In this document: positions 24,690 through 61,848 of the stretch, piece after piece | Layout: each line of letters begins with the position of its first letter | Numbering within the stretch: position 1 is the stretch's first letter | Assembly (NCBI GenBank): GCA_002269645.1 | Contig: NIVC01003792.1 | Span: 12,593 to 76,592 of the forward strand | Length of the DNA: 64,000 nt | From: Macrostomum lignano | Taxonomy: Eukaryota | Reading direction: 5' to 3' | Made by a program: the position numbers and the translations under genes | Notes under the pieces: generated by a model | What the model saw: the letters and a program-made list of their open reading frames with translations, nothing else | Told to the model about the DNA's origin: nothing | Databases searched by the model: none

Positions 24690-27521
24690 TCAGTTCAGAA
24701 CAAAGCGCTCTTTCAGCATGGCCTTCGGCTTGTGCCGCTTCTCATTGTAGGCCCGGTAGCGCTCCTCTTCGTTCAGCTGCCGCTGTCGTTTCACCTCATT
24801 TTCCATACGGCGAACCCGCGTCTGCCTCTTGATGGCGTCTAGCGGCACCCGGGTGTAGCGCAAGCTGAACGACACGTCCTCTTCCAGCACCGGCACGTTT
24901 GCCACCGGCGACGGGAACCGGTAGGTGCACCGATTGGCGCTCGAGTCCAACGCTTTTTTGGCCGCTTCGGAGTCCATCGCTTTCACCAGCTTCTTGTTCT
25001 TCTCCGGGTAATAATCCACGGGCAGGTAGCTGATGCCCCGGCTTGTAAGGTCCGTTTTGAACTGCTTCTCCACGGCGTACTTTTGCTTGCGGAGCTCGAA
25101 CATGTCGCAGAGTCGATCAGGCGTGCTGTACAGCCATATGAAGTTTTGCCGGAAAACAAGGTCTTCTGGCTTGTAGTAGAACTCCTTGGGTGTGCGCAGC
25201 GCCAGGAAGCTTAAGCCTTTGCGCGTGGCTTCGCACACCAGCGCCAGGCTCTCTACAAGCACACCTGGGATCACTTCACGAATTGTGCGGCTGTTCCAGT
25301 TAACGTTCTCCGTGATGATAGATGGGTTTACTTCCAGCAGCCAAGGCCTGCCACCTTCATCGATACAGATATCCAACGAGAAGACTTGGTAGCAGTTAGC
25401 CTTTTCCTTGATCTGGTCCAGTACGCTGCAACAAATGTTGGACACCATTGAGCGCATGGTGCGAAGGAATGCTTCATTTGTGCTAAAGTGCGTCCATGGG
25501 TCTTGACCTGGCGGCACGTCTGCAGGGTCAAAATCGGCAGCAGGTGCAGCCCCTGTGGCACCGGCAGTCCCAGCAGCACCACTCTCCGAGACAGTCGCAC
25601 CCGCTGAACTAGTTCCAGGGGCCGCGGCAGCACCAGATGTAGAAGCAGGGCTGTTGGCTCCTACACTTGGTGATGCGGAACCACTTGGCTGCACAGTACT
25701 AGTCGAAGTCGCCTGAGCAGTAGCATCTAGATTTTGAGCAGTCTTGTCCTTCTTTTGAGGTTTTGGGTTGAGCTCTGGCGCCTTAGTTGCCATCATGATG
25801 AGTGGTAGATTTTGCTTGTTGCCCTTCAGGCAGCCGTGACGCACAGCAAAGTTGTACTCTTCGCACTCGTCATTGTCAAACTCGCCAGCATAAAAACCAA
25901 CTCGATTAATTGGCTCCAATGGATCCAGTTCGACCGATGGCTTCCTGTTTTTCTTTTTCTTGGCGTTGTTCTGCGTCTGAAGCACGTCCTCAGAGGTGTT
26001 GTCACCCGATGTAGTCGTCGCATTGTTAGCACTGGCCGGTGGCTGGGTGGCTGGATCGATTTTGGGTCCGAAAGTGCGCCAAACTCGAGTACCTGCTAGG
26101 TGCTGTCGAGCTCTGAATTTCTCATTCTTCTGCATTTCCTTGTACGGATCGGGGACTTTTCTGACAAAGCCCGGATGCAGAAATCCCAGGACGCGCTTAA
26201 ACCGAGTAACGATTATCAGCAGGAACATTCGAATATCAAACTTCTGACCGGTGTTGGTGAGCATAGGATTTTTTATGTACCTCTGCACGACGAAATTTTG
26301 TCCCCACATAAATCGGTTGGAAGTCTTCACCTTAAGGAAGGTGCGAAGTTGCTCCGCAGAGGAAAGAATTCGAACGCCACGTCCGCTGCGCATGTACGAC
26401 GGCTTCACAATCCAGTGGGCGTCGGGAGCTGTCCTAGATACATCTTCTATGAACACGTTCTGCTGAAGTGACGACGAAAACACCTTTGTCTCGGGCACAA
26501 AAATTTTGCTCACGAAACACGGGCACATGCTGCCGTCGTGCAGTTTGTCGATTCCGAGCTCGTTTCGTGCCTCCTTTGACATGGTTTCGAAGCAGCCAGG
26601 CTCTGTACAAGGCTCCATGTTGTGTCGAGCGTACTGGTGCGGACACAGCATCTGACACGGAATTCGTTTCCGGGTATGAGGACAGAGATGCTCCTTGAAC
26701 TGTATACCCTTGTGCAGAGTGTTGCTTTGCAAGGTGAAAGCGAGGCTTTGCTTATCCTTTAAATAGATGTCCAACGGCAAACGGTTGACAAAATGGTGCT
26801 CCGGTCGCAGAGTGGGTAGCACCTCGGTGGCCTTGCGCTTGCCCAGCCAGCAGAAAACACGCTCACCCCCGTCCGTCGGCAGATTCTTGATCTTCTCCAT
26901 TTTCATAAAGTCGCAGAAGGCGGTAAAAAGCAGATCAAGGCAGCCCACTCCGTTGTTTTCTGTCTCGATGAAAAACTTTGTATTGTTGCAAAGCAGCTGG
27001 GGATAGCTTTCCTGATACAGGCGATTGTACATAGCCAGATGCTCGCCGAATCTGTACAGCTGTGTGCTGATAGAAAATGCTTTGCGTTCTTCAACCTTTG
27101 GCAACTCAGGCTCACCCTTGCCCTTCTTCTTTTTCTTCTTAGCGTTGCTCTTGTTTTCAATGTCATCGTTGGATGCATTTGTACTGTGCGAGGCCGGCAG
27201 CACCTCAGGAATAACTGCAGCTGTAGTTGCGGGCAGGCTCGTCTCAGCCACCACCACAGTCTCCGCAGCTTCTGGCGCCGTATTCGGCTCCACTACTCGT
27301 GGCACTTGCGAGTTGCTCTGGCTGTTTTGGTGAAAGGAGGACTCCGTGGACATTGGCTTAGCCTTCTTAAGCGACTGTTGGTCCATAGCGAACACATTCT
27401 TTATATCTTCTGTGGTAGCTGTCCCATCGCAATACTCGGAGTAGTTTGCTCGAAGCACTGCCGCATCGGCGCTGTTCGCTTTCTTTTTTAGAGGCATCTG
27501 CACGGGCGCGGCCTCTTGCAT
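24690..27521 (-). CDS. Tubulin-tyrosine-ligase-like (ATP-grasp) protein, most like the TTLL10 polyglycylase; intronless, 943 aa
   Basis: Motifs WIVKPSYMRSGRGV, VVQRYIKNPML, KFDIRMFLL, FSLDICIDEGGRPWLLEVN and EVIPGVLVESLALV (the last resembles TTLL10 EVIPGVVIETLDLV). Contains a large low-complexity insertion. Confidence 0.85.
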   Translation of the reverse strand: MQEAAPVQMPLKKKANSADAAVLRANYSEYCDGTATTEDIKNVFAMDQQSLKKAKPMSTESSFHQNSQSNSQVPRVVEPNTAPEAAETVVVAETSLPATTAAVIPEVLPASHSTNASNDDIENKSNAKKKKKKGKGEPELPKVEERKAFSISTQLYRFGEHLAMYNRLYQESYPQLLCNNTKFFIETENNGVGCLDLLFTAFCDFMKMEKIKNLPTDGGERVFCWLGKRKATEVLPTLRPEHHFVNRLPLDIYLKDKQSLAFTLQSNTLHKGIQFKEHLCPHTRKRIPCQMLCPHQYARHNMEPCTEPGCFETMSKEARNELGIDKLHDGSMCPCFVSKIFVPETKVFSSSLQQNVFIEDVSRTAPDAHWIVKPSYMRSGRGVRILSSAEQLRTFLKVKTSNRFMWGQNFVVQRYIKNPMLTNTGQKFDIRMFLLIIVTRFKRVLGFLHPGFVRKVPDPYKEMQKNEKFRARQHLAGTRVWRTFGPKIDPATQPPASANNATTTSGDNTSEDVLQTQNNAKKKKNRKPSVELDPLEPINRVGFYAGEFDNDECEEYNFAVRHGCLKGNKQNLPLIMMATKAPELNPKPQKKDKTAQNLDATAQATSTSTVQPSGSASPSVGANSPASTSGAAAAPGTSSAGATVSESGAAGTAGATGAAPAADFDPADVPPGQDPWTHFSTNEAFLRTMRSMVSNICCSVLDQIKEKANCYQVFSLDICIDEGGRPWLLEVNPSIITENVNWNSRTIREVIPGVLVESLALVCEATRKGLSFLALRTPKEFYYKPEDLVFRQNFIWLYSTPDRLCDMFELRKQKYAVEKQFKTDLTSRGISYLPVDYYPEKNKKLVKAMDSEAAKKALDSSANRCTYRFPSPVANVPVLEEDVSFSLRYTRVPLDAIKRQTRVRRMENEVKRQRQLNEEERYRAYNEKRHKPKAMLKERFVLN

Positions 27522-28167: not shown

Positions 28168-28746
28168 TCACAGGACCTCGCAGTGAAAAGCTGGTTTTAT
28201 TGGCTTTTTTGGAACCAACACAGCACGAATAGCCTCGTCAAACACGCTCTTCAGCCCTTTCTGAGTCAGGGCTGAACACTCAAGGTACTTCGCAGCGTTA
28301 ATCTCCTTGGCCATTGTCATACCCTGCAGGTGGGTGATGGGGGCCAGCTTCTTTGCTTTTAGCTCTTTAATTGTCTCCTTGTCGTCGCGCAGGTCCATTT
28401 TTGTGCCAACCAGCACGATTGGAGCGTTTGGACAGTGATGGCTCACCTCCGGGTACCACTTGGATCGAACGTTCTCAAAGCTTGTCGGACTGACGAGGGA
28501 AAAGCAGATGATAAACACGTCAGTCTCGGGGTAACTGAGCGGTCGGAGTCGGTCGTAGTCCTCCTGGCCGGCTGTGTCCCACAGGCCCAGGTTAATAGGC
28601 CGGTCATTGGCCACCACGACGGCTGAGTAGTGATCGAACACTGTCGGCACATAGGTGCTGGGAAAGGCGTTCTCAACGTAAGAGATGAGCAGACAGGTCT
28701 TGCCAACTGTTCCGTCGCCAACAAAGACGCACTTTACCGACTGCAT
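28168..28746 (-). CDS. rac: Rac-like Rho GTPase (192 aa, intronless), CAAX = CEVL
   Basis: [52 protein letters not shown]. The true ATG is at 28746; the ORF-track extension to 28824 is a tandem-repeat artefact. Confidence 0.95.
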
Positions 28747-28752
28747 TCTTAG

Positions 28753-28792
28753 GATACTGTGAGATACTGTGAGATACTGTGAGATACTGTGA
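28753..28792 (-). repeat. Four perfect 10-bp units just 5' of the Rac ATG (forward GATACTGTGA; TATCTCACAG-periodic on the minus strand)
   Basis: GATACTGTGA x4 directly visible. Confidence 0.95.
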
Positions 28793-29816
28793 GAATGAAA
28801 TTTCCGAAATTCTGTCTCTCGCAAGCCGTGTCAGCGTCACGCGTTTTATAATATTTGTGGCTTTCGAAATCGCTTATTTTTAGACTATGCCTCACTCAAA
28901 CGATAGAGAAATAACACAGTAAGCTCGTACCTTCTCTGCCCAGTCGCCCTCTCCTCTTCATGCCCTCTCTTATTTTTCATGCTTGCTACAAGCTATTAAT
29001 AGTCAGCTACTGCGTAATTAGTAAGCATGCAAATTCTTTCCATAGCATCCTTGGATATGGAAGTGACAGAAACATTGCCACCTACACGAATCTCAACTGC
29101 TGCACCGGAAAGCAAATAATTAGTTGAATTTGGGGTTCAACTTTTTCTTAGATTCAATGTATCGATTCAATCTAGCAAATTGAAACTGAAAAACAACTTT
29201 ACGGTTTCTTAATGGTACGAATTGATTAGAAACGCTGTGACACCCTGCCATGCATATTAAAATGTTTAGAAATACAGAAAAATCTGTCTATTCTCAAGCA
29301 CATTCATTCGCTAAGGAGGGCAAGGCAAGCAGCATGCATCAACCTTCCCTCTCGAAAGGGTGAAGCTGCATAAACTCTCCACTTGGCCAGCGCTCGCAAC
29401 CTTCTACTCATTTCAGAGCCCGATGCGATGCCCAGAGCAAAAGAGACGATGCCTTTGATGCCATCATCGCCTTCTCTTCTCTGCTGGTATGACTGACTAG
29501 CACGCAGCCTGAAAAAAATTGCAGTGTGCACAGAGCGTGCTTTTGTGCGCGCGCCCCACCCCAACGCCCCCTTGCCTAGCAGTTATCCCGACCCGCAAGT
29601 TTTGTCTGTGCAGACTAGCAATAGTCAGATCTATTTTTGCCAAGTCTACACAGAAACTGGAACTCAGCTATCTATCTACTTGTTTCTTTCATTCCTTTTT
29701 GCATATCGAAGCCTATCTCAGACATAAAAGAAAATTCTTACCAGGCGCAGAAATAGAATTTAGTTAGAAGATACGCTGTAAGCCAGCTCCTCTCTGTTTT
29801 AGACCTTCTGAGCGCG

Positions 29817-30404
29817 ATGCAGGCCATCAAGTGTGTTGTGGTTGGAGATGGAGCTGTTGGAAAAACCTGCCTCCTCATCTCCTACACGACCAACGCCTTT
29901 CCTAACGAGTACATCCCGACCGTGTTCGATAACTACTCGGCGAATATCATGGTGGACAGCAAGCCCATCAACCTGGGCCTGTGGGACACGGCTGGCCAGG
30001 AGGACTATGACCGGCTGAGGCCGCTGAGCTACCCGCAAACTGACGTGTTTCTGGTCTGCTTCTCCCTCATCAGCCCGGCCAGCTATGAGAACGTGCGGGC
30101 CAAGTGGTACCCGGAGGTGAGACACCACTGTCCCAGCGCTCCGGTCGTGCTGGTCGGCACCAAACTGGACCTGCGCGACGATCCAGAAACGATTGAAAAG
30201 CTAAAGGAAAAGAACCAGGCCCCCATCACCCACCTGCAAGGCATGTCGATGGCTAAGGAGATCGGTGCGGAGAAGTACCTGGAATGCTCAGCCCTGACTC
30301 AGAAGGGACTGAAGAACGTGTTCGACGAGTCAATTCGAGCCGTGCTGCGGCCTCCCAAGCCCACACAGAGAGGACGAATTGGTGGGAAATGCAAAATTTT
30401 GTAG
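29817..30404 (+). CDS. rac: Rac1-like GTPase (195 aa, intronless), CAAX = CKIL
   Basis: [60 protein letters not shown]. Confidence 0.97.
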
Positions 30405-32549: not shown

Positions 32550-33131
32550 ATGCAAACGATCAAGTGCGTTGTGGTTGGCGATGGAGCAGTCGGAAAAACA
32601 TGTCTGCTCATCTCCTATACTACCAACGCGTTTCCTAACGAGTACATCCCGACCGTGTTCGACAATTACTCCGCCAATGTGATGGTGGACGGCAAGCCCA
32701 TCAACCTGGGCCTGTGGGACACGGCTGGCCAGGAGGACTATGACCGGCTGAGGCCGCTGAGCTACCCTCAAACCAACGTGTTCCTTGTCTGCTTCTCCCT
32801 CATCAGCCCAACTAGTTACGAAAATGTTCGATCGAAGTGGTACCCGGAGGTAAGTCACCACTGTCCCAACACTCCGATCGTGCTGGTCGGCACCAAACTG
32901 GACCTGCGAGACGATCCAGAAACTGTTGAAAAGTTGAAGGCCAGGTATCTGGCCCCCATCACGCACCTGCAAGGAATGACAATGGCAAAGGAAATCAACG
33001 CAGTGAAGTACCTGGAGTGCTCAGCTCTGACTCAGAAGGGGCTGAAGACTGTGTTCGATGAAGCTATACAAGCTGTAATGTGCCCGAAGCCGAAGAGCAG
33101 CAAGAAGGGACTCAGCTGCAAACTGCTTTAG
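32550..33131 (+). CDS. rac: Rac1-like GTPase (193 aa, intronless), CAAX = CKLL
   Basis: [42 protein letters not shown]. Confidence 0.97.
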
Positions 33132-36361: not shown

Positions 36362-37133
36362 TCAAGGTTGGCTCAATGCTCTCGAAGGATCCAAGTAGCA
36401 CTTCTTCGTGAGTCTGGACACTGTTTCCGAGACTGTGCTGAACCGTCGGTGCCCATGCTGTACCGGAGTGTTCTTCAAACGGTAGGCAACACTGGTCATC
36501 ATGCTTAGGATATCGTTGCACTGGTACTCATCTGAAATAACTTTACTAAGAGCCTGGACGTAAAGCGAGCCCTTGCTCTCATCCCGAAAAGTGACGTTTC
36601 CTTCCGTATTAGCAAAGCACATTAGAGTATCGGCGTCACAAGCGCGAGCGGGCACGCTCGATGACTGCGGCGCATCAACTGCTAAGCCTCTGCTCGAACA
36701 CGAATTTTCCTCGATATGCTGGAAAGAAGAATAATTTGGGCTTGTCTCGCAGAGCCTCGCACTCGTTGGCCCGAATCGTGTCGTGATTGAAGAGATTTCC
36801 ACTGGCACGCCTTCTCGATCATAGATCCAGCCGTTACTTCCGTGACCCATCACAAATAAAATAAAGCAGCCAATCTTACTCAGCTCATCCCTCCGGGTGA
36901 GCTCGTCGTTGATAAACTCGAAGATTTCATGGCTCTTTGGGTTAAATTTCTTCACGTCAAAATTAAGTCTGGTAAACAAAGTTGACAAAATTTCAACATC
37001 TATCTCGGATCCGACTCGATCGGAAAATTCAGACTCGCAGTTGTACTTGTGCACATTGATCAAGAGAAAGCGGCGCGTTGGCTGAGTCACTGGGTAGGCT
37101 TCATCCCCTGCTCCAGGATCGAGCATGTGTAAT
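36362..37133 (-). CDS. Caspase-like terminal exon, catalytically dead, with paired compensating frameshifts across the active-site loop
   Basis: p20 features (FLLINVHKY, GSEIDVEIL, FILFVMGHG) and p10 features (DADTLMCFANTEG, GSLYVQAL, VSETVSRLTKKCYL). No QACRG in frame; the alternative frame over ~36771-36690 reads ANECEALRDKPKLFFFPAYRGK. Preceded by a phase-2 acceptor TTTTTAG at 37134. Confidence 0.85.
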
Positions 37134-37499: not shown

Positions 37500-43030
<5,531 letters not shown>

Positions 43031-45242: not shown

Positions 45243-48138
45243 TCAGCCTGAGGGCACAAGCTTTCGCAAGCGCCGCTGACTTGAATCGGGCGGACGTCCA
45301 TCAGCCTGTGACTCGCGTCGCACCAATCCTTTAAAGAAGGTATTTGCTAGACGCCTAGATACGTGGGTCAATTGCCCCGACTGCAGCTGGACATCCATGA
45401 ACGCATCGAAAACAATTAAAAAGACAGACCGGAAGTAGTTGACGCAACGAGGTGTTGCAGCGTTGAAGTAAGCGTAGCATAGGCAAGCAAATACCACCAG
45501 CCACTCAGGAGGGTGACACAGCTTCCCTCGTGAAAGAAGCGAAGTGAATTCACTGCTACAGGCTGGTTCGTAAACCGTAGCAGCCTGACAGTCGAGCTTT
45601 TCCTTAAAGGCCACGTAGCCACTGATAAAATATAGCGCTGCATTCTCCGCGTCAGAAATGTTGTCGGACAGTTGTGGGAGATTGTCAACAATTTTCCAGT
45701 CTCCCTGCGAAATTTCAGCAGAGCAACAGGCCAACGGTTGATGGTCGTCACAGACTAACTCCAATTTACTGTAAAGTTGCATTCGGCGTAGCCGCGCACT
45801 GGCCAAAATTTGATCAACGGATATATAATAACACCCGCCGTGGCCTTGCCGATAAATAGAAAACTCCCCCTCAAGCCGGTCAGTCTGCAGCTCACCTAAA
45901 AATTTTTGAAGTTAGTGCCTGGGTATGCAGGTCATATTTATTGAGTGTCAATTTATTATGGCAATAACAATACCAAAAAATTCCCGTAATGTTACGGGAA
46001 ACAGGGAGTAGTGAATAATACTACGTACCGAGCAACACGTACGAAAACCCTACTTTCATCAGCAAATGTCTAGACAAATCAGCCAGGCCGTTCGCAGTCT
46101 GATGGATAGCCTTGCGTGTCTCAGTAGTCAGCGATCGAGGGCGGCTAGCACCCCTACCACCTGGCATGCGATCAACGACAGCTGCAAAACTGAGCAGCTC
46201 CTGAATTGCACTTGAGTTGGTGCTGCTAATTGGGGCTCGCCGAATGTCATTCAGACGAATGTGGGACTCTGGTGACTTTACGTTTACAACTGTCCAAAAG
46301 TTGAGAACGCGCTCGACGAAGTCGGCAGTCTCAGAATAGCCATTCAGCTGTAATGCTGCAACTGTTTTCTCGTGGAATACATCAAGCACCAGCGAAACTT
46401 TCTGTCTCTCAAGAGGAGAGGGGCGGCACGCGACTGGATTAAGACGTGTCGTCCGTACAATATGATTTCGAGAAGCTTCCTCAAGCCTGGTGATTTCGTT
46501 CCACTTAGCCCGCTTGACTGGCTCTCCAATCACTGGCTGAAAGTCGATCTCACAAAAAGACTGCGTCAGCCAGTTGTTCCGGATGTTCTTCATCAAGTGT
46601 ACTGGGTCGTACAGCAGGAACAGCGGCTGATCGGGATCAGCTGGATTCTTCGCCAACCAGGGAACAGCAGAATCCCCTTGCAACAGTTGGAAGCAGTTGC
46701 GATTGGTGAAGTGGTTGTCACAAATTAGACTGACAACTGTGCCCCCTAGCTGATGTATTAGTTGGACGAGATGCACTACTTGGTCGTACAGGAAGGCTGG
46801 TTGCAAGCTGTAAATGGGTATCAGCCGTGCAACATAAGCGGGACCGCCCATGAACGACTTTACCATCAGCGCCAAAACAGTACGAGCAATTTGACGGGGA
46901 GCATCCTCTGAATACCCAATGGTATGACAGCCACTGAATCGTAGCGACGGCTTGACATACACTTCATCGAATAGAATGATGCAGTACCGCTGCAATGGGC
47001 TACAGTTTTCAAGATGTGACTGCACAATCGACTGGCAGTCACTGTCTGACCCAACACTGCCAAGACCACCAATGTGCCGCTTGAGTGTAGATGGGTGAGG
47101 CAAACAGGTGTACTCTCTCAAAGTTTTATAAGCTCCTCTCCCGGCAAAATAGAACCTGGCTGCAGTCATGATGTCCTCAGAAGTGTATCGGATTCCGTTG
47201 GGATTAAGCGAACTTAGTTTTAGCTGTCTGAGAAGAAACAACTGCTGAGGACTGTAGCTGGTTGAACCAGTAGTAGCTTGCAACGCCTGCAAATGGCTAT
47301 CCAATTCAGCAGACTGAGTAAACTCGGCATGCCTCACCCTATTCAAAACTGCCTCCAACTGGCTGAACCGCTCCATTCGGTGTTGAAAGCCAAGCAGATC
47401 AGAAATGCTGACAGGGGTATTGCGTCGGTGTGCTTCAGCTGCAAAGTTGCTTCTGATGGTAATAGACACCTCGACTGTTCGTTCAGTTACAATCATCAAG
47501 TTCACTCGATCTGACTTTTGCTGCACAAGCCAGTTGTCAGTAACAACACAGGCTAGTTTGGGAACCTGCTCAGTAAAAGTCTGCCATGAACTGATGCGGT
47601 CCTGAGCATTGAATTCTTCTAATTCATCTGGAATAGCAGCTCGCTCGCTCAGAAGCACACAACGTTGAGAAACCTCCCTGGATGATCCTAAATATAAATT
47701 ATGGTTAGTAACAATAGACCCACATCCAAAAGGATATTATTAATGAATAGCATAGCATAAGTCAGATGAATCAGATCTTACTTGGCACAGTTTGGCGTAC
47801 TGCACTGATAGGGACAGATGAAAAGATACTTGGAGGATCAACTGGTCGCAGAAAACGCTTTACTTTTATCATCCGAGCATTTTCAGGCCAGTGTTGGGCA
47901 CAAATCTTTTTTATTGTGGTCACCTATGAAATTTAAATGCACACTTGCTTGACCAAACTTAATAATAGTGCATAAGATAATATATATATTATAACAACAC
48001 ATGTACCTTAACTGAAGTGGGCAAAGCCATCATCCAGGCATCACAATCTGCTTTGTCCTTTGGAAAGCTATAAACAGCAACCTTTGGACCAGTCAAATAG
48101 TTGCCTTTGCAGTTGGGAATGCCGCACTTAAATGGCAT
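45243..48138 (-). mobile_element. THAP-domain P-element-superfamily transposase, 4 exons, apparently intact (~861 aa)
   Basis: Exons 48138-48007 (MPFKCGIPNC..YSFP..W), 47923-47782 (ICAQHW..RPVDPPSIF), 47687-46029 (ILFDEVY, LICDNH, YDPVHLMKNIRNNW) and 45895-45243 (QTDRLEGEFSIYRQGHGG). All junctions are GT-AG and in phase; total 2586 nt. TIRs not identified. Confidence 0.9.
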
Positions 48139-49358
48139 TAACAATGGATAGCTGTAATAATAGGTGATAAGCTGATAAAGATAGGCATAAGCAGTGAGTT
48201 AGATTTCTCAATAGAAGATGCAAAATATAACATTGATTAGGCCTAGAGACTAGGGTGGAGTAGGCCCTAGGATAATTTGGTTAAGGGAAATCTTTGTCCA
48301 GGGAAGAAATGTAAGCAATTGAAATCAATATATACAATATCTATAAATACATAGTTCTTTGAAGTTATGGAATCCAAATGACAACACTTCTGCAATTGAC
48401 TAAAACTACCCTTTTAATTGCAAAAACAAAAGTAGGCTAGCTTATACTACTAGATAGGCCTACCCACCTTACTAGGCCTATATAGGCCCTATTTAATTTT
48501 ATTTAAAAGTTTGAATCTCATTTTTATCTGACAGAGTCACTTAGATTAACATGAACTATTTCCTAAAATGGCATACATAGCTAAGTTTACTTACAAATTT
48601 AAAGTTAAATAGTGGATTATGATTTACAAATCATAAAAGACATTTACATTTAGAAAATTTCATGTGTTTATTCTATCTCTATACAGGGCTTAGACCTTAG
48701 GTTTAATAGCATAGGTGGTACACAGTAGACATGTATTTTGAATGCCTACAACAGCTGTATCAATGAATTTCAGTGGATGAAACCACTTATTAGGGAACTT
48801 GGTTGGAGTATGGATATATAAATATAATTGAGTATGGGCCTATATTATGAATGAGTGTCCATTCTCAAACTTAGCATCTTGTTATCATGTTTGTATGACA
48901 TGAGATATGCTATGGCAATACAAATTTAATTTTTTTATTAGAGAGATTTAATATAGAAGGCCTGATATGCTAGGCCAGGCTGGCTATAGTTTAGCTAGCC
49001 AAAGTGCATATATAGGCCCCCCCTAGTCTATGTAATTTCATGACTACGTCAAAATGTGATAAAACTATATCTATAGAACGTTTTCGCGACTAAAACATAA
49101 TAGAAACCAATAGAACAGGGTCTTAAAAGTAAAATGTTAGATGGGTTTTTTTGAAGCAGGCTTAAATCAATTACAACAGGCTTCTGAATATTAAAAACGT
49201 GAAAATTTGCTATCTCGCCAATGTATTTTGCGGTGAAAATCGGACTTCAAAAAAATTTCCACGAAATCCGAGTGTAACGTCCTCTATCTACTAGTGGTCC
49301 TTGAATTTAGTTTAGTTGTTTAGTTTAAAACTGAATTATTCCAAATTCACTGTTGAGG

Positions 49359-50127
49359 CTACTTTTCTGTGTTCGACTCAAACTCGGAAGCTAGTCCGGG
49401 GTCCAAGAAGCACTTCTTGGATAATCGTGTCAACGTCTCCGACACGACGAATAACCTGTTCCCATCTCTTAGTACTGGGTTTTTCTTGAGACGGTCGTTG
49501 GCAATAGTCAGCATGTCGAGCAGGTGCTCGGTCTTGTGCATCTCTTCAATCACATCGCACACTGTCTGCACGTATGGCGACCCTTCTGTAGGGTTTCTTA
49601 GAGAAGCCTGGCCGCTTGGAGTGGCGAAGCACAACACGAAATCGCTATCCCTCGGGCAGTAATATGCATTAGACACTTGCTGGTCCACCCATGCACCTGG
49701 AATGGTTTCGCAACCCTTTCCTCGGCATGCCTGAATGAAGAAGAGTTTCGGCTTGTTACACAGTCCGGTGCACTCGTTTCCTCGAAACCGTTTAGCGATG
49801 GCCTGGACCTCCCATGCTTCACCATCGATGCCGTAAATGGAGGATTCGTCACCATGAGCCATGATGAAGCATACGAAACAGCCATGGTTAGAAAGGTCCG
49901 GAGAGAGGGCTTTAAGACTTACGATTCGAACGAGTTCATTGCAAGTTAGATCTTCGTGAACCTCGACAATAAAATTTAAGCTGGTAAACAATCTCTTCAC
50001 TCTATCCACGTCTAATTCCGAGCCAATTCTTTCTTCAAATAGCGCGCGATTTCTATATTTTTTTATGTTGATGATCAGACAGAAGCCCTGAGGTGAGGTA
50101 ACTGGATAAATGGCCTCCTTGTTTCGT
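49359..50127 (-). CDS. Caspase catalytic domain exon (p20+p10), active-site residues intact
   Basis: IYPVTSPQGFCLIINIKKY, GSELDVDRV, CFIMAHG (His), KPKLFFIQACRG (Cys), DSDFVLCFAT, GSPYVQ, VSETLTRLSKKCFL. The frame is open upstream of the ORF-track GTG start to a phase-2 acceptor at 50128. Confidence 0.95.
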
Positions 50128-53100
50128 CTGGAATTGTTGAATTACGATTTTGTAGGTCGTAATGTAGCTTCGATATTATTTAAATGCAGTTATTTTAGTC
50201 AGTTCAAAGAGGGCCGTTGAGTACCCCTGCAAAATGAAGGCCTCAAAATAAAGAATCCTGAAGGTAAACAGCAATACCTATTCCTCTAACCCCTGAGCAC
50301 GCGAACGCACACGGATACGTACAAAGGCACACACTCACACAATGTAAGCAACCCTGACTTTCTTATCGTCAAACATGTACACACTCTGTACCTCGGAGAT
50401 TGTCAAGAATAATTTGATAAGCTTGATTTTCTCGCAAAAGCCCAAAGTCACTCGTAATTTGGCTTGGCACGAGAGTCAGACACCTTCCTGCTCACCTACT
50501 TTCACTCAATTCAGACACCATGCTTTGCTAACTGCCAAAATCCGAACATAAAAATTTTTTTTAGTCTAGCGCAAGAGTAAAAGAGTGCATGCACCCAGAG
50601 CTCACCTGTTCAGATCGTTTAACTTTTGTGTCGCAGCTTGGAACGAAACTCTAGGTTCCTGTGAAGGATAAACTTCAGTTTGTTCAGCGGGTCCAGTAGG
50701 TTCCTGTGAAGGATAAACTTCAGTTTGTTCAGCGGGTCCAGTAGGTTCCTGTGAAGGATAAACTTCAGTTTGTTCAGCGGGTCCAGTAGGTTCCTGTGAA
50801 GGATAAACTTCAGTTTGTTCAGCGGGTCCAGTAGGTTCCTGTGAAGGATAAACTTCAGCTTGTTCAGCGGGTCCAGTAGGTTCCTGTGAAGGATAAACTT
50901 CAGTTTGTTCAGCGGGTCCAGTAGGTTCCTGTGAAGGATAAACTTCTGTTTGTTCGATGACTCCTGACTGTGCCTCAGTACTGGAGTTTAATCGACGAAT
51001 ACCTCGCGGCTTTGGAATCGGATGCGGAGGCACAACCGGCGGCTGTGCTTTATGGGGCTTAAATAAACCCTCAGATTGGCCAGAACAAACGTCATATTCC
51101 ACGTCTCTATGGTCGTTGGAGTCGAAACTTTGAGCACTGTTTAAATGTGAGATTCGGTGATCATCTATTGCATGTATACTTTTTAATAGGATATTTCAAG
51201 TTAACTTACGAGGCAAATTCGTTACACTCGTCGAAATCACGGTGAGGCTCATCCAGCTGATCGTGAGGCTCTGAGGCTTCAGTTTTGCTGCTTTCCTTTT
51301 CTTGTATTGAGCCGACTTCCAGAATTTTTCTGTAAAAACAAGACGCAAAATCTAATGGTGGACAAAAGAACCCCCATCATCGTTGAAACTTTACCATAAT
51401 ACGAGCGTAGGAACAACAAAACGATAGTTTCAGCTGTTGCTGTTGCAAAGTTTTTTTGAGATAGATGCTTAAAAAATCTTACTTTTGTTTTTCGAAAGCC
51501 GCTCTTACGGCCGCCTTGAAAAGGCTATCTAGCCCCGATCTTCTCAGAGCCGAGCACTCAATGTACAATTCAGCGCCAATATCTTTGGCCAGAGCTGTCG
51601 CCTGCAAGCTGCTGATGGGAGCAAGCCGCTTTCTGTGCAGTTTCTCCATTTCAACTCTATCGTCGAGCGCATCCATCTTGGTCCCAACCAAAATTATTGG
51701 AGTGTTCGAGCAGTGAAGAGCTATCTCTGGAAGCCATCGGGTGCGCACGCTGTCAAAGGTAGCGGGACTGGCAATGGAGAAGCAGATGAGGACGACGTCT
51801 GTCCCTTCATAGTTTCCCGGCCGCATTCGGTCATAGTCTCTCGAGCCACTGTTATCCCACAGGCCAACGCGAATCGTATATCCATCTACCTGAACCTCTT
51901 TTGATAAGCAGTCGTCGGTCTCAGTAGGAACATACTCAACTGGGCAGAGTCCTTCAGCATAGGCCACGAGCAGACAGGTTTTGCCGACCTTCTCGTCACC
52001 AACGACATTGATTTTTAGTTTCAACGCAGGGACAACGGCAGCTATGTTTTTGTTCCGTTCCTCTTGCTCTGCTTTCATTTGAACCTGTCTCTTTTTTAAC
52101 GCTCTAAAACGATTCGATGTTTGTTGATTTTTAGATGAAAACTAGGATAAAATTATAACGCTTTTATCATTGATTTAGAAGTTTCATGCAAAAAATATGT
52201 ACCTGTCAGGTACTGGAGGCAGAAGCTGTGGTGGTGGCAGAGGTATGTCCTGGGCTTGTGGTAGAGGCCTTCAAAGGTGTAGAAATGTTTAAGTTATATA
52301 GTTGCGTTCAATTATCAGTTAACTGAAGTTGATTAATCGTGTAAAGCACTACAATTAGGTTGAATATTCTTCGATGAAGGCTCAATAATAGGCTTTATAA
52401 TTCAGAATTTACAATAAATTAGCAATAATCTATATAAGGTCGTTGGACTAATAGCTTAGCTCGTACAGAGAAATTGCAACAAAAATAAGCCAATTGTCAA
52501 AGCTTGGTCTTATCCCAGAGGTTGTCAAACTCCGGCCCTCAAAGCCTCTCTTTCCGCCCCTCCAGTCCTTTGAAACTTCACAATCGCAATCCCATCCGCT
52601 CTCTTCTCAGCTCTCTTTTCATTTTCTCTTCTCCTTTCTCATTTCCCCTCTCCCCTCTATCCTCTCTCCCATCCTCTCCTTTCTTTACTTCCTTCTCTTA
52701 TCTCCCCTCTCCACTCTTTACTCATTCTCCTCTCCGGTCTCGTAAGGGATCTTTGGTCTCACAGTCCTTATTGTTTCGCGGGCCAGTTTTTGGTTTGCAA
52801 ATCTAAACTGTGACAGTTGAAATTGTGACTAAACTGTTTATTAAACTTGTGCACTACACACGCTCGTATTAACTATCTAAGGTGCTCTGTGGAGGGAATT
52901 TCAAGGAAGAGCATTGCAAATATATCCAGAAAGACACACTAAGAGAATCTTTCATGCCTACCTCTGACCAAGGTCGTCAGTCTTGAACGGTCTTTGTTGA
53001 ATTGTGTCTTGTTTGTTAGATTCCGATGGCTCATCATCAATAAAGTCGTACACATATTCTTCCTCGGTAGCCTCCATGTTGTAGCAGCTTGCATAAGTCC

Positions 53101-56100
53101 TGCAAATAATCGTTTTAGTGCTTTTATCACGTCGGTTTGATGGTTTGAGTAAAGACCCCAGATACTAAAACTGGGGTCAACTAGTGGGTGACTTCAAAGC
53201 ACAGGGAGATACTGGGCTAACGCACCTGTTTGCTGACTGGCGGCGCGCCTGTCTCCTGTCCTTCTCTCACCCTCCGCAGCCCCTGCTTGGACTCAACCGC
53301 AGGGATATCAGGGCGGTGACAATCCCTCTCGGGCCGTGACTGTTTTGCCAGACATCGCTACCTCCTGGGAAAAATCCGCAGTGAGAGGTATGCCCGTTCT
53401 GCCTCTACGTAAGTCATGTAATTAGTCAAGCTAGCTCGTATTTGTACATTTTAAGAATTTCGGGGTCGCATTCGCCAGTTTGAAATTTCACATCCTGGAA
53501 AAGTCTTATCTGTTACTTTTTTGAAGAGTGAAACTTCACAAGCTCAAATTTTCATATCGCGAAGTTATTTTAAATTTTGGATTGCGGGAGTGACTAGCAC
53601 GGGTTTTCAAAGTTGTGAAATTTCTTGTGAAGCGCCCCTATTATGTTTTATTGCGAGTAGTCAAATGTAGCTCGTAAAATAAAATTTCTTTTTCTCACGG
53701 ATTTGTTGCCTGAACATCCGCCTTCATGTAGCCATGCCGGTTGTATAAATCTATAGACGGACACGTATAGATGTCTGGATCGGCGCCTCCAGTTGCTCCG
53801 GCCAAAGGATAATCAAAATCTCTAGAAATATTTCATTTGAAGAAAACGAATTTTATGTTTAATAACAGGAAGAGTAAAAAACAATTTCTGTTAAGGATCC
53901 AGCCAGACATTTTTGCTACAGTGAAAATTCACAAGGATGGCTAGATTTTTCTCGCACATGGTCAAAGAAGATTCATGTCACTAGCCTTCGAAATCGTCCG
54001 AGATTTCAATGACATTCAATAATAATGATATTCAACAATGATATTCAAAGATATTCAATGATTTTGCCAGAAGGTCCGGATTTTTTCCCTCAGAATGCAT
54101 TCAGTGCACCCCCTAGGCAGAAATTACGAGCAAGCGCTGCAACTCAGTGCGGCCTTGCCAAGCCTTCAAATTTCGTTATTGTCTCTGACTTTAACGGCCT
54201 TCTTCTAGGCGAAACTTCCGGACATTCAGCAGGCATTGGGTGCGAGACTACGTAGGCACCCTATTTCGACATTTTTCAAGCACCGTAACTGATGGGGGAT
54301 CCTCAACTAGGGAAGACCGACTTTTTTTAGAAATAACGAAGAACGCTCATATTTGCAGGAGGGCTGTGGGCACCCTGACGCATCGCTTTGTGTGACGTGG
54401 GAATGTGATGTGCGAAATCGTCCCACAACCCGGCGCTGAGGCAATTCTGATTCCGCTGACTCCTGAACTCATTCTGTACGCAAATTTGTAAAGCGGCCCT
54501 TTGACTTTCTAATTGCCAGGCATGTGCAACTCTCCGTGCCTTGGAGGGGGGGTTGCCCGCAATTTGACTTTCTAATTGCCAAGCATGTGCAACTCTCCGT
54601 GCCTTGGAGGGGGGGGTTGCCCGCAATTTGACTTTCTAATTGCCAGGCATGTGCAACTCTCCGTGCCTTGGAGGGGGGGGTTGCCCGCTCTCCGTGCCTT
54701 GGAGGGGGGGTTGCCCGCAATTTGACTTTCTAATTGCCAGTGCATGTGCAACTCTCCGTGCCTTGGAGGGGGGGGGTTGCCCGCAATTTGACTTTCTAAT
54801 TGCCAGGCATGTGTACTCTCTGTGCTATAGGGGGGGGGGGTTGCCCGCAATTTGACTTTCTAATTGTCAGGCATGTGCACTCTCTGTGCTATAGGGTGGG
54901 GGGGGGGTTGCCCACAAGGGTGTGAAAAGCACGACGAGAATTTACGAGTGCAAGCGCCAAGTTGATGTGGGTGTTCATTTAATCAAATGAGGTACCAGAG
55001 GGAGGTCGCATCGCGAGAGTCAGACGCGTTTTCCGGTGACTCTGTTCCGCCTTTTTTGAACTCCACTTTGGTAAATTTGCTTTTAAACTCTTTTAATCAA
55101 TGGAAAACTACTACTGGCTATTGATAGGTATAAGTCTGTAAATAAATACCGCAGTTGCGGCGCCTCTCATATGAGTGATGGAAAGTAAACGGGAGCTTAA
55201 ATTTTTTTCAGATTTTTTTAAGCAGAGCAGAACAGCATTGTTTTGTCAGCGCACCCAACTGGAGCTTTTGAGTACATGTAGTATGCTAGTAGTATACTGA
55301 GCAAACTTAAACAAGTTGTCGAGATTGAACACCAAAAAATTTTAAGCTTACGGTTCGATTCCTTGATCACGTGTCGCCGCTCGAATCGGATCGGGTTGTA
55401 GATACTCACATTCATCAGTTTTTTGGGCACTATTGAGGAAATATGATTATTTTTTCACGGTTAATTTTTTCTAAGAAAATGATTTTAATTTACTGTTTTG
55501 TTTGCGACAGATAAAGAGAGTATTGACTGTTCGCGCTTTTGCGTTGCTCTTCCTATCATTTTCGTGAAGGTCATCAGTGCAATTTACTGATGAACTTGAG
55601 ACACCAATGACTAAAGGATGCTACAATGGCAAATTGTGAAATCTGCACAGAGAATATTGTCACGCAGTATCAGATAAGATATGGTCGATACTCTCTGAAT
55701 CAAAGACGCAATCAAATGATTCGAGACCAAGAACATCTCGTACACGTAGCCATTCTAATATAAAAGATACCTGTACTCGTTCGAACTCTTAGTTCTTCTC
55801 CAAAAGATGGCTTTTGACGGGAGAATACTTAGTGCCCTGCTGCAATAAAGTTTAAAGGAAACGAATATTAGGAGAGCGTAGTAAAATATTCAGCGTAAGG
55901 CATATCAGACGAAAAGTAATAAAAAGTAAAATGAACACGTACCTTTTGTTTGTTTTTGACAAAGTCTGATTGTACTTCGTGAAAATAATCTCTTCAAAAA
56001 CTTCCCGGACACTCTCAGGATTCAGAGCGGAGCACTCTTTGTAAGTCTCAGCGTTGATAATTTTTCGCAGATCACGGCCTTCGAACTGACTAATCGATGT

Positions 56101-56475
56101 CGAACTGTCTCGCAGGTCCCGCTTGGTTCCAACCAGAATAAAGGACGCCTTGTGGAAGAGCTTTCTGCACCTTTTAAACCATTTTCTTCTCACGTTTTCA
56201 TAGCTCGCTCGGCAATCGATGGCAAAGCAGAGAAGCACAACATTCGCCTTTGGGTAACTCGGCATGTCGACAAAGCATTCGTCCTTACTGGGCGAGTCCC
56301 ACAGTGTGATCTGAAATGTGTGTCCCTCTAAAGTGCTCTCCATGCTGTGTTTCTTAAAGCAGTCAGTGGGGATGTGCATGCGCTGGAATTCTATGCCTAA
56401 TTGGCAGTCAATCAGGCAGGACTTGCCAACCGCTTCGTCGCCGATGGCGAGGCAATTGATCTTGTTTGAACTCAT
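49359..56475 (-). CDS. Predicted tandem Rho-like GTPase - Rho-like GTPase - caspase fusion protein (~925 aa, 7 exons)
   Basis: Exons 56475-55943, 53099-52962, 52268-52203, 52103-51483, 51329-51210, 51136-50606 and 50127-49359. All six introns are GT-AG and phase 2. The exons are open in one frame and sum to 2778 nt. The link across the 2.8-kb intron (55942-53100) is the least certain. Confidence 0.8.
50653..50955 (-). repeat. Coding tandem repeat, 45 bp / 15 aa (EQTEVYPSQEPTGPA), ~6.7 copies, in exon 51136-50606
   Basis: Near-perfect copies visible; unit length is a multiple of 3 and the frame is open. The exon has a TTTAAACAG acceptor and a GTGAGC donor. Confidence 0.95.
51483..52103 (-). 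CDS. Atypical Rho/Rac domain exon (GTPase 1 of the fusion)
   Basis: GDEKVGKT (G12E), YVPTETDD, WDNSGSR (Q61S), TKMD, ECSA; no CAAX. It ends CAA AA|GTAAG, so the ORF-track stop lies inside a donor site. Confidence 0.9.
53183..53406 (+). mobile_element. Degenerate internal fragment of the same LINE family as 37.5-43 kb, lying in an intron
   Basis: Aligns by eye to ~42460-42685 (CTTCAAAGCACAGGGAGA, CTGCTTGGACTCAACCGCAGGGA, GGAAAAATCCGCAGTGAG). Confidence 0.85.
54500..54917. repeat. Tandem repeat, ~63-bp unit (TTTGACTTTCTAATTGCCAGGCATGTGCAACTCTCCGTGCCTTGGAG(G)nTTGCCCGCAA), ~6-7 copies
   Basis: Period of 63 (54500 vs 54563); one internally deleted unit; G-runs lengthen toward the right. Confidence 0.93.
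55943..56475 (-). CDS. Highly divergent Rho-like domain exon (GTPase 2)
   Basis: GDEAVGKS, HIPTDCF, WDSPSKD (G60S, Q61K), TKRD, ECSA. Phase-2 donor AG|GTACGT at 55942; strong acceptor TTTTTTAG at 56527, 51 nt upstream of the ATG. Confidence 0.85.
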
Positions 56476-58165: not shown

Positions 58166-60555
58166 CTACCCGTGATGATTTTTGCTTTCTGTTTTTCTCA
58201 CGGAAGCCAATACCGCCTGTCTAAAGATGTCTTCCACAGCTGTTCTACACAGAGCGGAGCACTCTAGATACACTTCAGCACCGATCTCTTTAGCCAACTG
58301 CTCGCCCTGAGTCACGCTGATTGGAACGAGATTCCTTTCCTCCAGCTTGTCGATGGTCTCTGGGTCATCGCGCAGATCGGAATTCGTTCCGACCAGGATA
58401 AATGGCTTTTCAGGACAATGACGGCTCACTTCCGGGTACCACTTGGCCCGTACATTCTCGAAACTAGCAGAATTGATGAGGGAGAAGCAGATGATAAACA
58501 CATCTGATTGGCGATACCGCAGAGGCCTTAAGCGGTCAAAGGACTCCGCACAGCTCACGTCCCACAAGCGGAGACACAGTTGGCTTCCAGCCAGTGAACC
58601 CTCCACGGCAAAGCAGTCGTCGGTCTCTGTGGGAACATACTCCTGAGGACACTGGTCCTCTGCGAATGCGGTCAGCAGACTGGTCTTGCCAACCGCTTCA
58701 TCTCCAACTATGACGACTTTTAATGTTATTGTGTCACTCTTCGTCTTTGATTCGGCGGTTCGAAACACGACAATAGTTTCCGGATAATCAACTCGAGAAC
58801 TAGGCTCTCTGAGGTTTTCCGAGACTGGCTCTCGCTGAGCACTGGCGGACTCCGTGTCCGAGCTTTCGTCGTCACTTTCTGTTTCGGATGTCGGCTGCTC
58901 GTCTTCGCTGAGCTCGGGACTCACGGCTTCTTGTGTACTGCAAGACATTGTTAAGAGGGAAGATTACGCATTCCCGTAGACAGATAACTGTGTCTGCAAT
59001 CCTTCATAGCTTGAGTTCCAGTTAGAAAAAGCTTACCTCGAAGCAGGCTGTTGGGGCTGATCCAAAACTTCAGCGGATGAAGTGTCCGCTGGCTCGCAAG
59101 TTTCACTCGAAGCTTTGGTTTTCTTATCGTGCGACTTCTGTTGTCTAAAAAATATGAGCATATGGGATACATTTTCCACTGCTCTGGTTTTGGCAAGGAA
59201 TGCTATTATTCTGAATAATTTCAAATTTAAGAAACAGTCGTACGATGCGATATTGTACGAGTATGTTTTCCCAGGGCGTAAACCGCGGAAAAAGGCTTTA
59301 ATCGATGATGGAGATCTGCAAGTTTTTTTAAATAAGCTCGTGCAAAAAACTCGTATTAGTGGCTAATTAAAAAGAATTCTAACAGAATTTTAAAACAAAA
59401 ATTACTCCAGAAGAGGAGCTAGAGTATTTACTTAATGCTCGGCTCATCAGGTGAAGTTTCGGTCTCGGAATCTTTGGTTCCACCATCGGAAAGAACACTT
59501 TGCCTGCAAGGGTTCATTGGAAATCTTGTTGCAAAATATTTTAATGAATATATTTCAGGAATAAAGTGTGCTCCAGCAAATTACTTGATAGACGTTTCAG
59601 AGTTCCTTCTCGACGACGATAGCGAATGAAGGAACGAAACGACTTTCTTGGAATCTCTGAAATTATTGCAAGTTGTTAAGTAGTGTGTGGCGATCTTGTT
59701 TTTGAAAGCGTTCTCGCTCACGCATTTTGATAGCTCGTGCATTTTAAATCTGTGAAAAAACTCGAGAAGTACCCAAGCCAGAATCTAAAGAGCTTTGATT
59801 ATTTTTCAAAGCTCTTTGCTGATAACTTTCACTTCTGTTGGCCCTTTATAAAAGATTCTTGATACACATGTACAACATTTTTAACCTACAAGTGAACTCA
59901 AACAGTGGCTGAAACTATCTTTACGCACCCGTGGTGTTCATTTTTCTTCTTTTTGCCATTGCGAGCGTCAGAAGAGTTAAGAACTAAGCGAGCGGCCTCT
60001 TCGAACACTTCTTTTAATCCTTGCTGAGTAATTGAGGAGCATTCCATGTACTTTGCCGCATTGATTTCCTTGACGAATTCGTTGGCTTGCTCAGCTGTAA
60101 GGTTTTTCTCAGCATCTTCTTCCTTGGTCTCGCTTATTTTCAAACCTGTTCGCATGTCAAGCTTTGTTCCAACCAAAATAATGCGTGCTGAGGGGCAGTG
60201 GTGGCTCAACTCCGGGTACCACTTTGTACGCACATTGCCAAGCACAAGTTCGGCTGACTTGGTCAAGTCAAGGCAGATGATAAACACGTCTGTCTGCGGA
60301 TAGGCGACTGGTCTGAGAGTGTCGTAGCCTTCACTGCCTCCCGTGTCTGTCAGCGCCAGTTCGATAGACTCCGATTCCATGGGCAGCCGAGCTGAGTACG
60401 TTTTGTAAATTGTTGGAATAAACGTGTCTGGCATTGAGCCATTTACGTAGGTCTCAATCATGCAGGTCTTGCCAGCGGTAGAGTCGCCAACAATAACACA
60501 TTTGATCATTCTCATGATTGCTGCTATCAAACTTCCGACAAGTTTTTTTGCAGAG
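58166..60555 (-). CDS. Multi-exon unit encoding two further atypical Rho domains (GTPase 4 - Ser/Glu-rich linker - GTPase 3), ~536 aa if it starts at ATG 60515 and ends at 58166
   Basis: Exons 60555-59929 (GDSTAGKT, FIPT, DTGGSE, TKLD), 59656-59585, 59503-59432, 59144-59037 and 58937-58170 (GDEAVGKT, YVPTETDD, WDVSCAE, TNSD). All junctions are GT-AG, phase 2 and in frame. The 3' end is unresolved (stop at 58166, or donor GTAGAT). Confidence 0.8.
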
Positions 60556-61275: not shown

Positions 61276-61848
61276 TCAGCCAGGGGTTGGATTTACATGT
61301 AGAAAGCATTTCTTTGATGACTGCAACGCCGTCTGCGAGACTGCAAAAACTTTGCTGCCTCCTGCCGCAGTCCGGGTTTGAGGCGCTTATTTACATGAGT
61401 CCGCATGTCCGATATGCGCTCTTCCATGCGCCTTCTCGAGGTCGCACATGGCCTGAATAAATTGATCTCATCTCTGAAAGCTATGTAGTCCTCAGTGTTG
61501 GTGTAGCACATCAAGAATTCGCTGTCCATCGAGTAGTTCGGATCGACCAAGTACGTTCTCTAACTTAGTAGCGGCCCAGGATGGATTGAATTTCTAGAGG
61601 CTCGCCGTCACTACCATGGATCCGATCGTGCATTCTGTGAGCCATTATGAAGCAGAAAAAGCATCCGTGATCTTTAATCTTAGAGATGAGTGCGAAGCAG
61701 TTTTTACGTAGTTCAGCAATCTAGTTGCACTTCAAATTCTCGTGCACACGGGCTCTCATGTCTGTGAGCCGTCTCTATTCATTCTGATTGAATTCACAGA
61801 GATTAATAACCAAAGCTCTAGGCCCTGGGGGATGTCACCTGATGGTAC
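61276..61848 (-). pseudogene. Caspase pseudogene exon paralogous to the 49.4-50.1 kb exon
   Basis: Manual translation gives YHQVTSP, ALVIN, VHENLKCN*, DHGCFFCFIMAHRMHDRIHGSDGEPLEIQSI, DSEFLMCYTNTED, DMRTHVNKRLK and VSQTALQSSKKCFL. It has in-frame stops, frameshifts, His-Gly changed to His-Arg, and the QACRG region is missing. Phase-2 acceptor ACAACAG at 61849. Confidence 0.85.

Follow-up and report, generated by a model that had tools for sequence, protein, structure and literature searches.

A gene model joining two Rho-derived domains to an intact caspase in the flatworm Macrostomum lignano

Results

Ten exons form one Rho-Rho-caspase reading frame

We analyzed a 64,000-nucleotide stretch of the Macrostomum lignano genome (contig NIVC01003792.1 of assembly GCA_002269645.1, positions 12,593 to 76,592; hereafter the window) and found on its minus strand a gene that encodes two Rho-like small-GTPase domains followed by a caspase. 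The gene corresponds exactly, at 56475-49359, to the GenBank coding sequence of PAA49772.1 (BOX15_Mlig021837g1; 1015 amino acids, aa), and our own ten-exon translation was identical to that protein. Compared with the GenBank contig, the window was an exact reverse complement (0 mismatches over 24,642 nucleotides, nt). All nine introns are GT-AG and phase 2, and the reading frame stays open across them for 3,048 nt (1015 codons), through six short exons of linker and a repeat-bearing exon of 531 nt. In the open reading frame (ORF) listing of the minus strand the gene appears in pieces, namely one ORF with similarity to caspases at 49359-50009, one with repeats at 50602-51102, and two of small-GTPase type at 51479-52078 and at 55852-56475. 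Consistent with the original prediction, the apparent stops of these ORFs lie inside GT splice donors, including the donor CAAAA/GTAAG at 51483/51482, and both GTPase exons lack a stop codon of their own.

The original prediction had joined seven exons through six GT-AG, phase-2 introns into one frame of ~925 aa. We reproduced that frame exactly, and five of its six junctions are those of the GenBank model. The sixth, from 55943 to 53099, jumps three small in-frame exons (exons 2, 3 and 4), the source of the 90 additional residues that PAA49772.1, which has the same start, carries after its first GTPase domain. Since phase-symmetric exons can be skipped without breaking the frame, the seven-exon version was still in frame, and it is superseded here by the ten-exon, 1015-aa model.

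The two domains are called GTPase 2 and GTPase 1 in their order along the protein. Exon 1 (55943-56475) contains the ATG at 56475 and encodes GTPase 2 (aa 1-177), a degenerate domain of Rho origin with a GDEAVGKS P-loop (56442-56419), WDSPSK in place of DxxGQ (56301-56284), TKRD (56127-56116) and CSAL (56034-56023). The three overlooked exons follow: exon 2 (55771-55839; 69 nt; SRALSILPSKAIFWRRTKSSNEY), which has an AG acceptor and a GT donor in phase 2 and is required for exact reproduction of PAA49772.1, exon 3 (55352-55429; 78 nt), and exon 4 (53699-53821; 123 nt), which contains Met259 (MKADVQATNP). Exons 3 and 4 are separated by a 1.5-kb intron that holds a 64-bp tandem repeat with runs of G8-9 (about 6 units, 88-97% identity, 54500-54917). 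Exon 5 (52962-53099) encodes an acidic linker, EEEYVYDFIDDEPSE, and exon 6 (52203-52268) a proline-rich linker, PLPQAQDIPLPPPQLLPPVPD.

GTPase 1, a Rac-like domain with a Rho insert (aa 336-542), occupies exon 7 (51483-52103), which ends in the CAAAA/GTAAG donor; its motifs are the P-loop GDEKVGKT (52000-51977), WDNSGS (51859-51842), TKMD (51682-51671) and ECSAL (51559-51545). Behind it come a further acidic linker in exon 8 (51210-51329) and the linker of exon 9 (50606-51136), in which VEYD (51102-51091) is a candidate caspase site and a proline-rich stretch and a repeat also occur. Tandem Repeats Finder gave this repeat a period of 45 nt and 6.8 copies with 98% matches (50955-50652), encoding EQTEVYPSQEPTGPA, and the second linker of the protein carries about seven 15-aa repeats. 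Exon 10 (49359-50127) encodes the caspase p20/p10 domain and the stop codon, with the catalytic His851 in MAHGD (49862-49848) and Cys894 in QACRG (49733-49719).

Methionines occur at positions 1, 33, 45, 71, 259, 276, 345, 429, 479, 488, 849, 956 and 965 of the 1015-aa protein. The caspase domain starts near residue 770, and zero methionines lie between 488 and 849, directly ahead of the catalytic His; an mRNA starting downstream of GTPase 1 therefore cannot encode an intact caspase. The annotation of the M. lignano assembly drew on genome-guided assemblies of transcripts, made with StringTie and TACO and supplemented by a de novo transcriptome mapped to the genome; reads marking trans-splice and poly(A) sites defined the gene ends, and TransDecoder called the ORFs (PMC5730564). 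Because that annotation was built from transcript assemblies, the PAA49772.1 model is transcript-derived rather than ab initio, and by this annotation the gene is expressed in M. lignano. A 188-aa junction-spanning query, used to look for independent transcript fragments across the junctions, matched ordinary small GTPases only. Together, we regard the gene and its Rho-Rho-caspase fusion as very probably real.

The caspase domain retains its catalytic and specificity residues

We searched the full protein against Pfam (E-values up to 1) and found two Ras matches, an overlapping Roc match and Peptidase_C14, plus noise. Both profiles that the original prediction had proposed looking for, Ras and Peptidase_C14, were thus present on the spliced protein, and no CARD, DED, DD, ANK or COR domain was found, as expected from its statement that a death-fold prodomain is missing. 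Peptidase_C14 (PF00656) matched aa 774-975 at 153.5 bits (cut-off 21.4; 1e-44), and the caspase ORF alone reached 130 bits (1e-37). The best similarities among solved structures were to procaspase-7 (3.5e-37) and caspase-8 (4e-35), with caspase-3, -9 and -10 scoring close by.

The catalytic dyad aligned to the procaspase-7 motifs (His851 in MAHGD, Cys894 in QACRG), bearing out the earlier claim of small-GTPase domains and a catalytically intact caspase in one gene. In the caspase-7 alignment, the Asp-specific S1 pocket was also kept: R794 (ERIGS against vRNGT), Q892 and R937 (SLRN against SWRS). Asp908, Asp920 and Asp922 fall in the segment that separates p20 from p10. From the sequence we propose three candidate sites of self-cleavage: VEYD598 in the linker, and AWVD908 and CPRD920 in that inter-subunit segment.

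The Rho-like domains have lost the catalytic residues of a GTPase switch

Pfam Ras matched the GTPase 1 ORF (51479-52078) at 1e-34 and the GTPase 2 ORF (55852-56475) at 7e-26, the weakest score. The best solved-structure matches of GTPase 1 were Rac1 (2e-59), Rac3 and Rac2, followed by Cdc42 (1e-49), and the domain showed the features of the Rho family, with GDEKVGKT, T35, DNSG, TKMD, SAL and a Rho insert. The locus has four atypical Rho domains (GTPase 1, GTPase 2, and GTPase A and B of a neighboring gene described below), which we then aligned with three canonical Rac genes of the window. G10, G15, K16, T35 and D57 were invariant in this alignment, and TKxD and SAL were kept in GTPase 1 and GTPase 2. 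Identity of these two domains to Rac was 36-49%, with Tyr32 kept in GTPase 1 and Thr35 in both.

All four atypical domains had exchanged Gly12 for E or S and Gln61 for S, A or K, so that the catalytic Gly12/Gln61 pair was missing from GTPase 1 (G12E, Q61S) and from GTPase 2 (G12E, G60S, Q61K). A CAAX prenylation box was found in none of the four, GTPase 1 and GTPase 2 ending in splice donors. Rnd, RhoH and RhoBTB are changed likewise at positions 12 and 61 and do not hydrolyze GTP. Because these proteins share both changes, loss of hydrolysis is predicted here, and the Rho domains are therefore more likely to be GTP-locked or nucleotide-independent soluble binding modules than switches; GTPase 2 is probably Rho-derived and non-catalytic. 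The nucleotide-cycling GTPase gate of the original prediction was weakened by this comparison: given G12E and Q61S/K in the two domains, together with G60S and the lost Rho insert in GTPase 2 and the absence of CAAX from both, a classical gate is unlikely and would be the least compatible reading.

A second genomic copy encodes the same ten exons

A second copy of the locus, on NIVC01001849.1, was >99% identical and had all ten exons, most of them 99.9-100% identical; the M. lignano assembly contains 180 Mb of duplicated blocks (PMC5730564). This copy is the source of PAA63380.1 (757 aa; one GTPase plus caspase), and its model keeps the same GTPase 1-to-caspase junctions. Exon 3 of the second copy (L001 8391-8469, against window 55429-55352) carries a 1-nt insertion that cuts off GTPase 2, and because of this insertion, which may be real or a long-read or assembly error, the PAA63380.1 ORF restarts at Met259 in exon 4. 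PAA63380.1 was rejected as a distinct architecture, as all ten exons are present at its locus and the ORF merely restarts.

Exon 5 was a hot spot of divergence, with 10 of 138 nt differing between the copies (8 nonsynonymous, 2 synonymous; L001 10832-10969 against 53099-52962). It adjoins an unalignable stretch of intron (window 53328-53169), and the exon and adjoining intron may form a local patch that has another ancestry or changes fast. Just downstream of the gene, ~9.5 kb of the second copy (L001 14946-24435) is missing from the window at about 48995, an insertion or deletion.

UniProt A0A1I8GCE2 (1207 aa, four GTPases) was rejected as a reliable model, with its repeats in the wrong frame and the p20 part lost. 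It merges the upstream GTPase A-B gene with the caspase gene through a GTPase B-GTPase 2 junction, 58202/56484, that is in frame (phase 0), and this junction may be able to join the two genes.

The architecture appears confined to M. lignano

We searched 1.84 billion representative proteins with PAA63380.1 (phmmer) and screened the 150 best matches, which reached down to 148 bits, by domain-wise BLAST for Rho and caspase. Only two entries among these 150, both from M. lignano, combined the two domains. A Rho-caspase of another species should have exceeded 148 bits; one built on a remoter branch of the Ras superfamily may have fallen below. A protein search with the spliced product likewise returned two M. 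lignano proteins with both Ras and caspase domains, and PAA49772.1 belongs to the cluster of the first of them. No paper describing the locus or a small-GTPase-caspase fusion was found in the searchable literature, queried with locus names and for small-GTPase-caspase fusions, in line with the original view that such a fusion is undescribed; the protein itself is nevertheless already deposited, as an unnamed 'hypothetical' in GenBank (PAA49772.1) and UniProt (A0A267DMJ5).

A 2024 survey of lophotrochozoan apoptosis genes reported ANK-caspases and an M. lignano kinase-caspase and gave platyhelminths no other unusual prodomain; across lophotrochozoans the non-death-fold caspase prodomains were ANK, kinase, PARP and Z-binding (PMC11463336). 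The Rho-caspase architecture, so far apparently confined to M. lignano, adds to these caspases with non-death-fold prodomains.

A protein search with the caspase domain alone returned proteins of 227-442 aa, none with Ras; it gave similar-length matches only and is uninformative on long fusions. The best caspase-only matches were all from M. lignano: ANK-caspases (P0092 group, P0134, P0196, P0255), the ANK-protein-kinase-caspase P0121 and the LRAT-caspase P0212. Caspase-domain identity was 40-46% to the P0092/P0243 ANK-caspases and the P0121 ANK-kinase-caspase, the highest values (44-46%) being to ANK-caspases. P0092, P0134 and P0196 had strong Ank matches, and the fusion protein had none.

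ANK-caspases have been described as restricted to parasitic flatworms (PMC11463336). The free-living M. lignano has several (P0092, P0134, P0196, P0255; Pfam Ank down to 1e-32), which qualifies that restriction.

The fusion gene lies among Rac genes and further caspase-like sequences

Upstream of the fusion gene is a separately annotated gene (58166-60515, minus strand; 560 aa in GenBank) with two atypical Rho domains, GTPase A (G12S, Q61S) and GTPase B (G12E, G60C, Q61A, K116N). In our reconstruction, its A-domain and linker exons end in phase-2 junctions. A simple 4-exon path for this gene gave 512 aa against the 560 in GenBank, and enumeration of GT-AG paths gave nine alternatives.

At 17-28 kb from the fusion gene are three Rac genes of canonical type, all intronless (28168-28824, minus; 29817-30404, plus; 32550-33131, plus), with G12 and Q61 intact and the CAAX boxes CEVL, CKIL and CKLL. 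A caspase-like ORF at 36365-37126 (minus strand; 254 aa, own Met) is 34-36% identical to the caspase of the fusion and keeps the His (GHG) with QHIEE for QACRG; its sequence suggests a pseudogene or a pseudo-caspase that lacks the Cys. A decayed caspase fragment (61300-61747, minus strand) lies close upstream of the GTPase A-B gene, in a window that ends at 64000. It consists of p20 and p10 parts (35-45% identity), contains in-frame stops, has AHR for AHG, and may be the remnant of another array unit. Some 35 kb thus hold three Rac genes, four atypical Rho-domain exons, an intact caspase and two further caspase-like sequences.

In the fusion gene and in the reconstructed A-B gene, every Rho domain occupies one exon of its own between phase-2 introns. 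Because such exons are frame-symmetric (phase 2-2), they can duplicate, insert or be skipped without a frame break. The fusion probably arose by local Rac duplication, followed by shuffling of phase 2-2 Rac exons onto a caspase of a clade expanded in M. lignano, with the canonical Rac genes as the likely source of the fused exons. The nearest caspase domains, those of the ANK-, ANK-kinase- and LRAT-caspases of M. lignano, point to a lineage-specific expansion with ANK, ANK-kinase and LRAT prodomains, and it is probably within this expansion that the prodomain was exchanged.

Discussion

Rho domains as proposed recruitment modules

We favor, as standing a little better than an even chance, the explanation that this is a real gene of shuffled origin whose Rho domains are recruitment modules. 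The recruitment mechanism taken by itself is put forward more tentatively, at somewhat under an even chance. Ordinarily, death-fold domains (CARD, DED) serve to recruit caspases and turn them on. Here a prodomain of two Rac-derived domains and two long acidic/proline-rich linkers would do the CARD/DED job. The Rho domains, permanently 'on' or nucleotide-independent, and soluble since the lipid anchor is lost, would bind a partner; partner binding would bring caspase domains together, upon which the protease would dimerize and could then cut itself at the candidate Asp sites VEYD598, AWVD908 and CPRD920 to become active.

Several findings weigh against this explanation. Transcript support comes through the published annotation pipeline and is hence indirect. 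Among the matches listed there was no orthologue from another species, and long-term selection on the fusion is therefore unsupported. GTPase 2 is strongly degenerate, with WDSPSK for DTAGQ and an 11-residue gap at the Rho insert, and the effector loop of GTPase 1 departs from Rac (V36E, F37T). In the second genomic copy, the exon 3 insertion, if real, cuts off GTPase 2. The caspase domain fell among the ANK-caspases in a neighbor-joining tree with a bootstrap of 59-66%, and its assignment by similarity as an initiator or an effector had to be rejected, with caspase-7, -8, -3, -9 and -10 scoring closely.

Alternative readings of the locus

A rather unlikely alternative is that the gene is a young, effectively neutral chimera, made by tandem duplication and exon shuffling in a redundant genome, transcribed with no selected function and now decaying at its N-terminus. 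Its occurrence in M. lignano only (among the 150 best matches), the state of GTPase 2 (G60S, Q61K, no Rho insert, weakest Pfam score), the decayed caspase pseudogene and Cys-less caspase of the same window and the duplicated blocks of the assembly (PMC5730564) would all fit. So would the exon 3 frameshift of the second copy, although this may be a long-read indel error. A neutral origin sits poorly with a caspase in which every catalytic and specificity residue is intact, and with a 1015-codon frame kept across nine introns. The Rho domains argue the same way: nucleotide-binding residues are kept at 50-64% divergence from Rac, and positions 12 and 61 are replaced in four of four atypical domains, a pattern that is not random.

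The second alternative, which we consider unlikely, is an integrated-decoy sensor: the Rac-like domains would be baits that mimic host Rho, and their modification or binding by a pathogen effector aimed at Rho switch regions, or loss of a normal Rho partner, would free or cluster the caspase and lead to cell death. It would be a one-protein counterpart of the way Pyrin and caspase-1 guard Rho indirectly in mammals. In a single-chain form of this sensor, doubtful to the same degree, GTP-locked, unanchored Rac mimics would catch Rho-attacking effectors or endogenous binders of active Rac and fire the caspase, and a longer isoform with four baits may form through junction 58202/56484. Many Rho-modifying toxins hit switch-I residues (Tyr32, Thr35), and these are the residues kept (Tyr32 in GTPase 1, Thr35 in both domains) despite only 36-49% identity to Rac. 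The absence of CAAX and of the catalytic residues is expected of baits that no longer signal, the caspase belongs to a lineage-specific family that diversifies rapidly and exchanges its prodomains, as is typical of immune genes, and the exon 5 linker differs between copies by 8 nonsynonymous and 2 synonymous changes. Against this, the domains lack both Gln61, on which deamidating toxins act, and the site of CAAX cleavage, the mimicry is imperfect (V36E and F37T in the effector loop, compared with the neighboring canonical Rac genes), and we know of no related sensor in flatworms.

It is very unlikely that the fusion is an annotation artefact in which separate GTPase and caspase genes share a polycistronic precursor resolved by spliced-leader trans-splicing: multi-gene precursors make up about 7% of the transcriptional units in M. 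lignano (PMC5730564), the neighboring GTPase A-B gene is annotated separately and A0A1I8GCE2 shows how easily these exons are over-merged, but within the linker and caspase exons no in-frame Met precedes the catalytic His, so a separate mRNA would encode no working enzyme, the GTPase exons end in donors rather than stops of their own, and a pipeline that splits precursors at trans-splice and poly(A) sites kept one gene in two genomic copies.

Comparison with known systems

The recruitment-module explanation can be set beside several known systems. Nearest are the platyhelminth ANK-caspases and the M. lignano ANK-protein-kinase-caspase (PMC11463336), which likewise have a long non-death-fold prodomain and an intact caspase, contain the caspase domains closest to that of the fusion and, in M. 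lignano, share its species and lineage-specific expansion. The fusion differs in its prodomain, which has two Rho-family domains and neither ankyrin repeats nor a kinase. CARD/DED initiators (caspase-8, -9, -10, -2) resemble it in a long N-terminal non-catalytic region followed by p20/p10 with QACRG, and the proposed recruitment and proximity-induced dimerization would be the same. The fusion, however, lacks a death fold and is at least as similar to the effector caspase-7 (3.5e-37) as to caspase-8 (4e-35).

On the GTPase side, Rnd1-3, RhoH and RhoBTB share the substitutions equivalent to Gly12 and Gln61 while keeping the P-loop and base-recognition motifs, and RhoBTB has its Rho domain within a larger multidomain protein. 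Unlike these proteins, the fusion best matches Rac1-3, has no CAAX and no BTB, and combines tandem Rho domains with a C-terminal protease. Other tandem-Rho proteins (Oculina patagonica ACROYT_G016856, with four Rho domains, and M. lignano GTPase A-B) also have linker-separated Rho domains, but none of them carries a caspase. ROCO proteins (DAPK1, LRRK2) similarly place a Ras-superfamily GTPase inside a large, cell-death-linked protein, and the Roc model matches both domains of the fusion; the fusion nevertheless lacks COR, kinase and death domain, its domains are of Rho/Rac type with a Rho insert, and the Roc match is weaker than that to Ras.

The Pyrin inflammasome guards RhoA activity indirectly and recruits caspase-1 through ASC and CARD in trans. 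Under the decoy reading it would be alike in concept, the state of Rho being linked to caspase activation, whereas in the fusion the Rho-like domain is covalently joined to the caspase and there is no sequence relationship.

A Rho/Rac prodomain is a conceptually different case beside the ankyrin, kinase, PARP and Z-binding replacements, and it places members of the cell's principal family of cytoskeletal and innate-immune switches in one covalent chain with a protease of cell death. If the Rho domains are baits or recruitment modules, the gene would offer an alternative route to caspase activation and a clear example of the shuffling of frame-symmetric domain exons in a gene cluster. If the decoy reading were true, an animal would possess an immune receptor of guard or decoy type that is built on a caspase and stands apart from death-fold and NLR systems, and even a young neutral chimera would still document the birth of such architectures. 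M. lignano is amenable to RNA interference, in situ hybridization and transgenesis.

Other features of the window

Directly downstream of the fusion gene, a 545-aa ORF (46021-47658, minus strand) matched the Pfam TNP-like RNase H N-terminal domain at 4.6e-9, and a short ORF upstream of it (47989-48144, minus strand) has a Cys-rich start that by eye resembles a THAP zinc finger; the two suggest a transposase-derived gene or element. At 37700-42820 on the plus strand, a GC content of 0.57-0.61 and long overlapping ORFs coincide with what by eye is a non-LTR (long terminal repeat) retrotransposon-like region with reverse-transcriptase- and RNase-H-like motifs. A single 943-aa ORF (24690-27521, minus strand) matched the tubulin-tyrosine-ligase family (Pfam TTL, 3.5e-23). 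Near the start of the window, a simple-repeat block (12655-13567) has long ORFs on both strands (PYPNIPY and GYGILGY peptides), and the GC skew spikes to 0.42 in 12001-14000.

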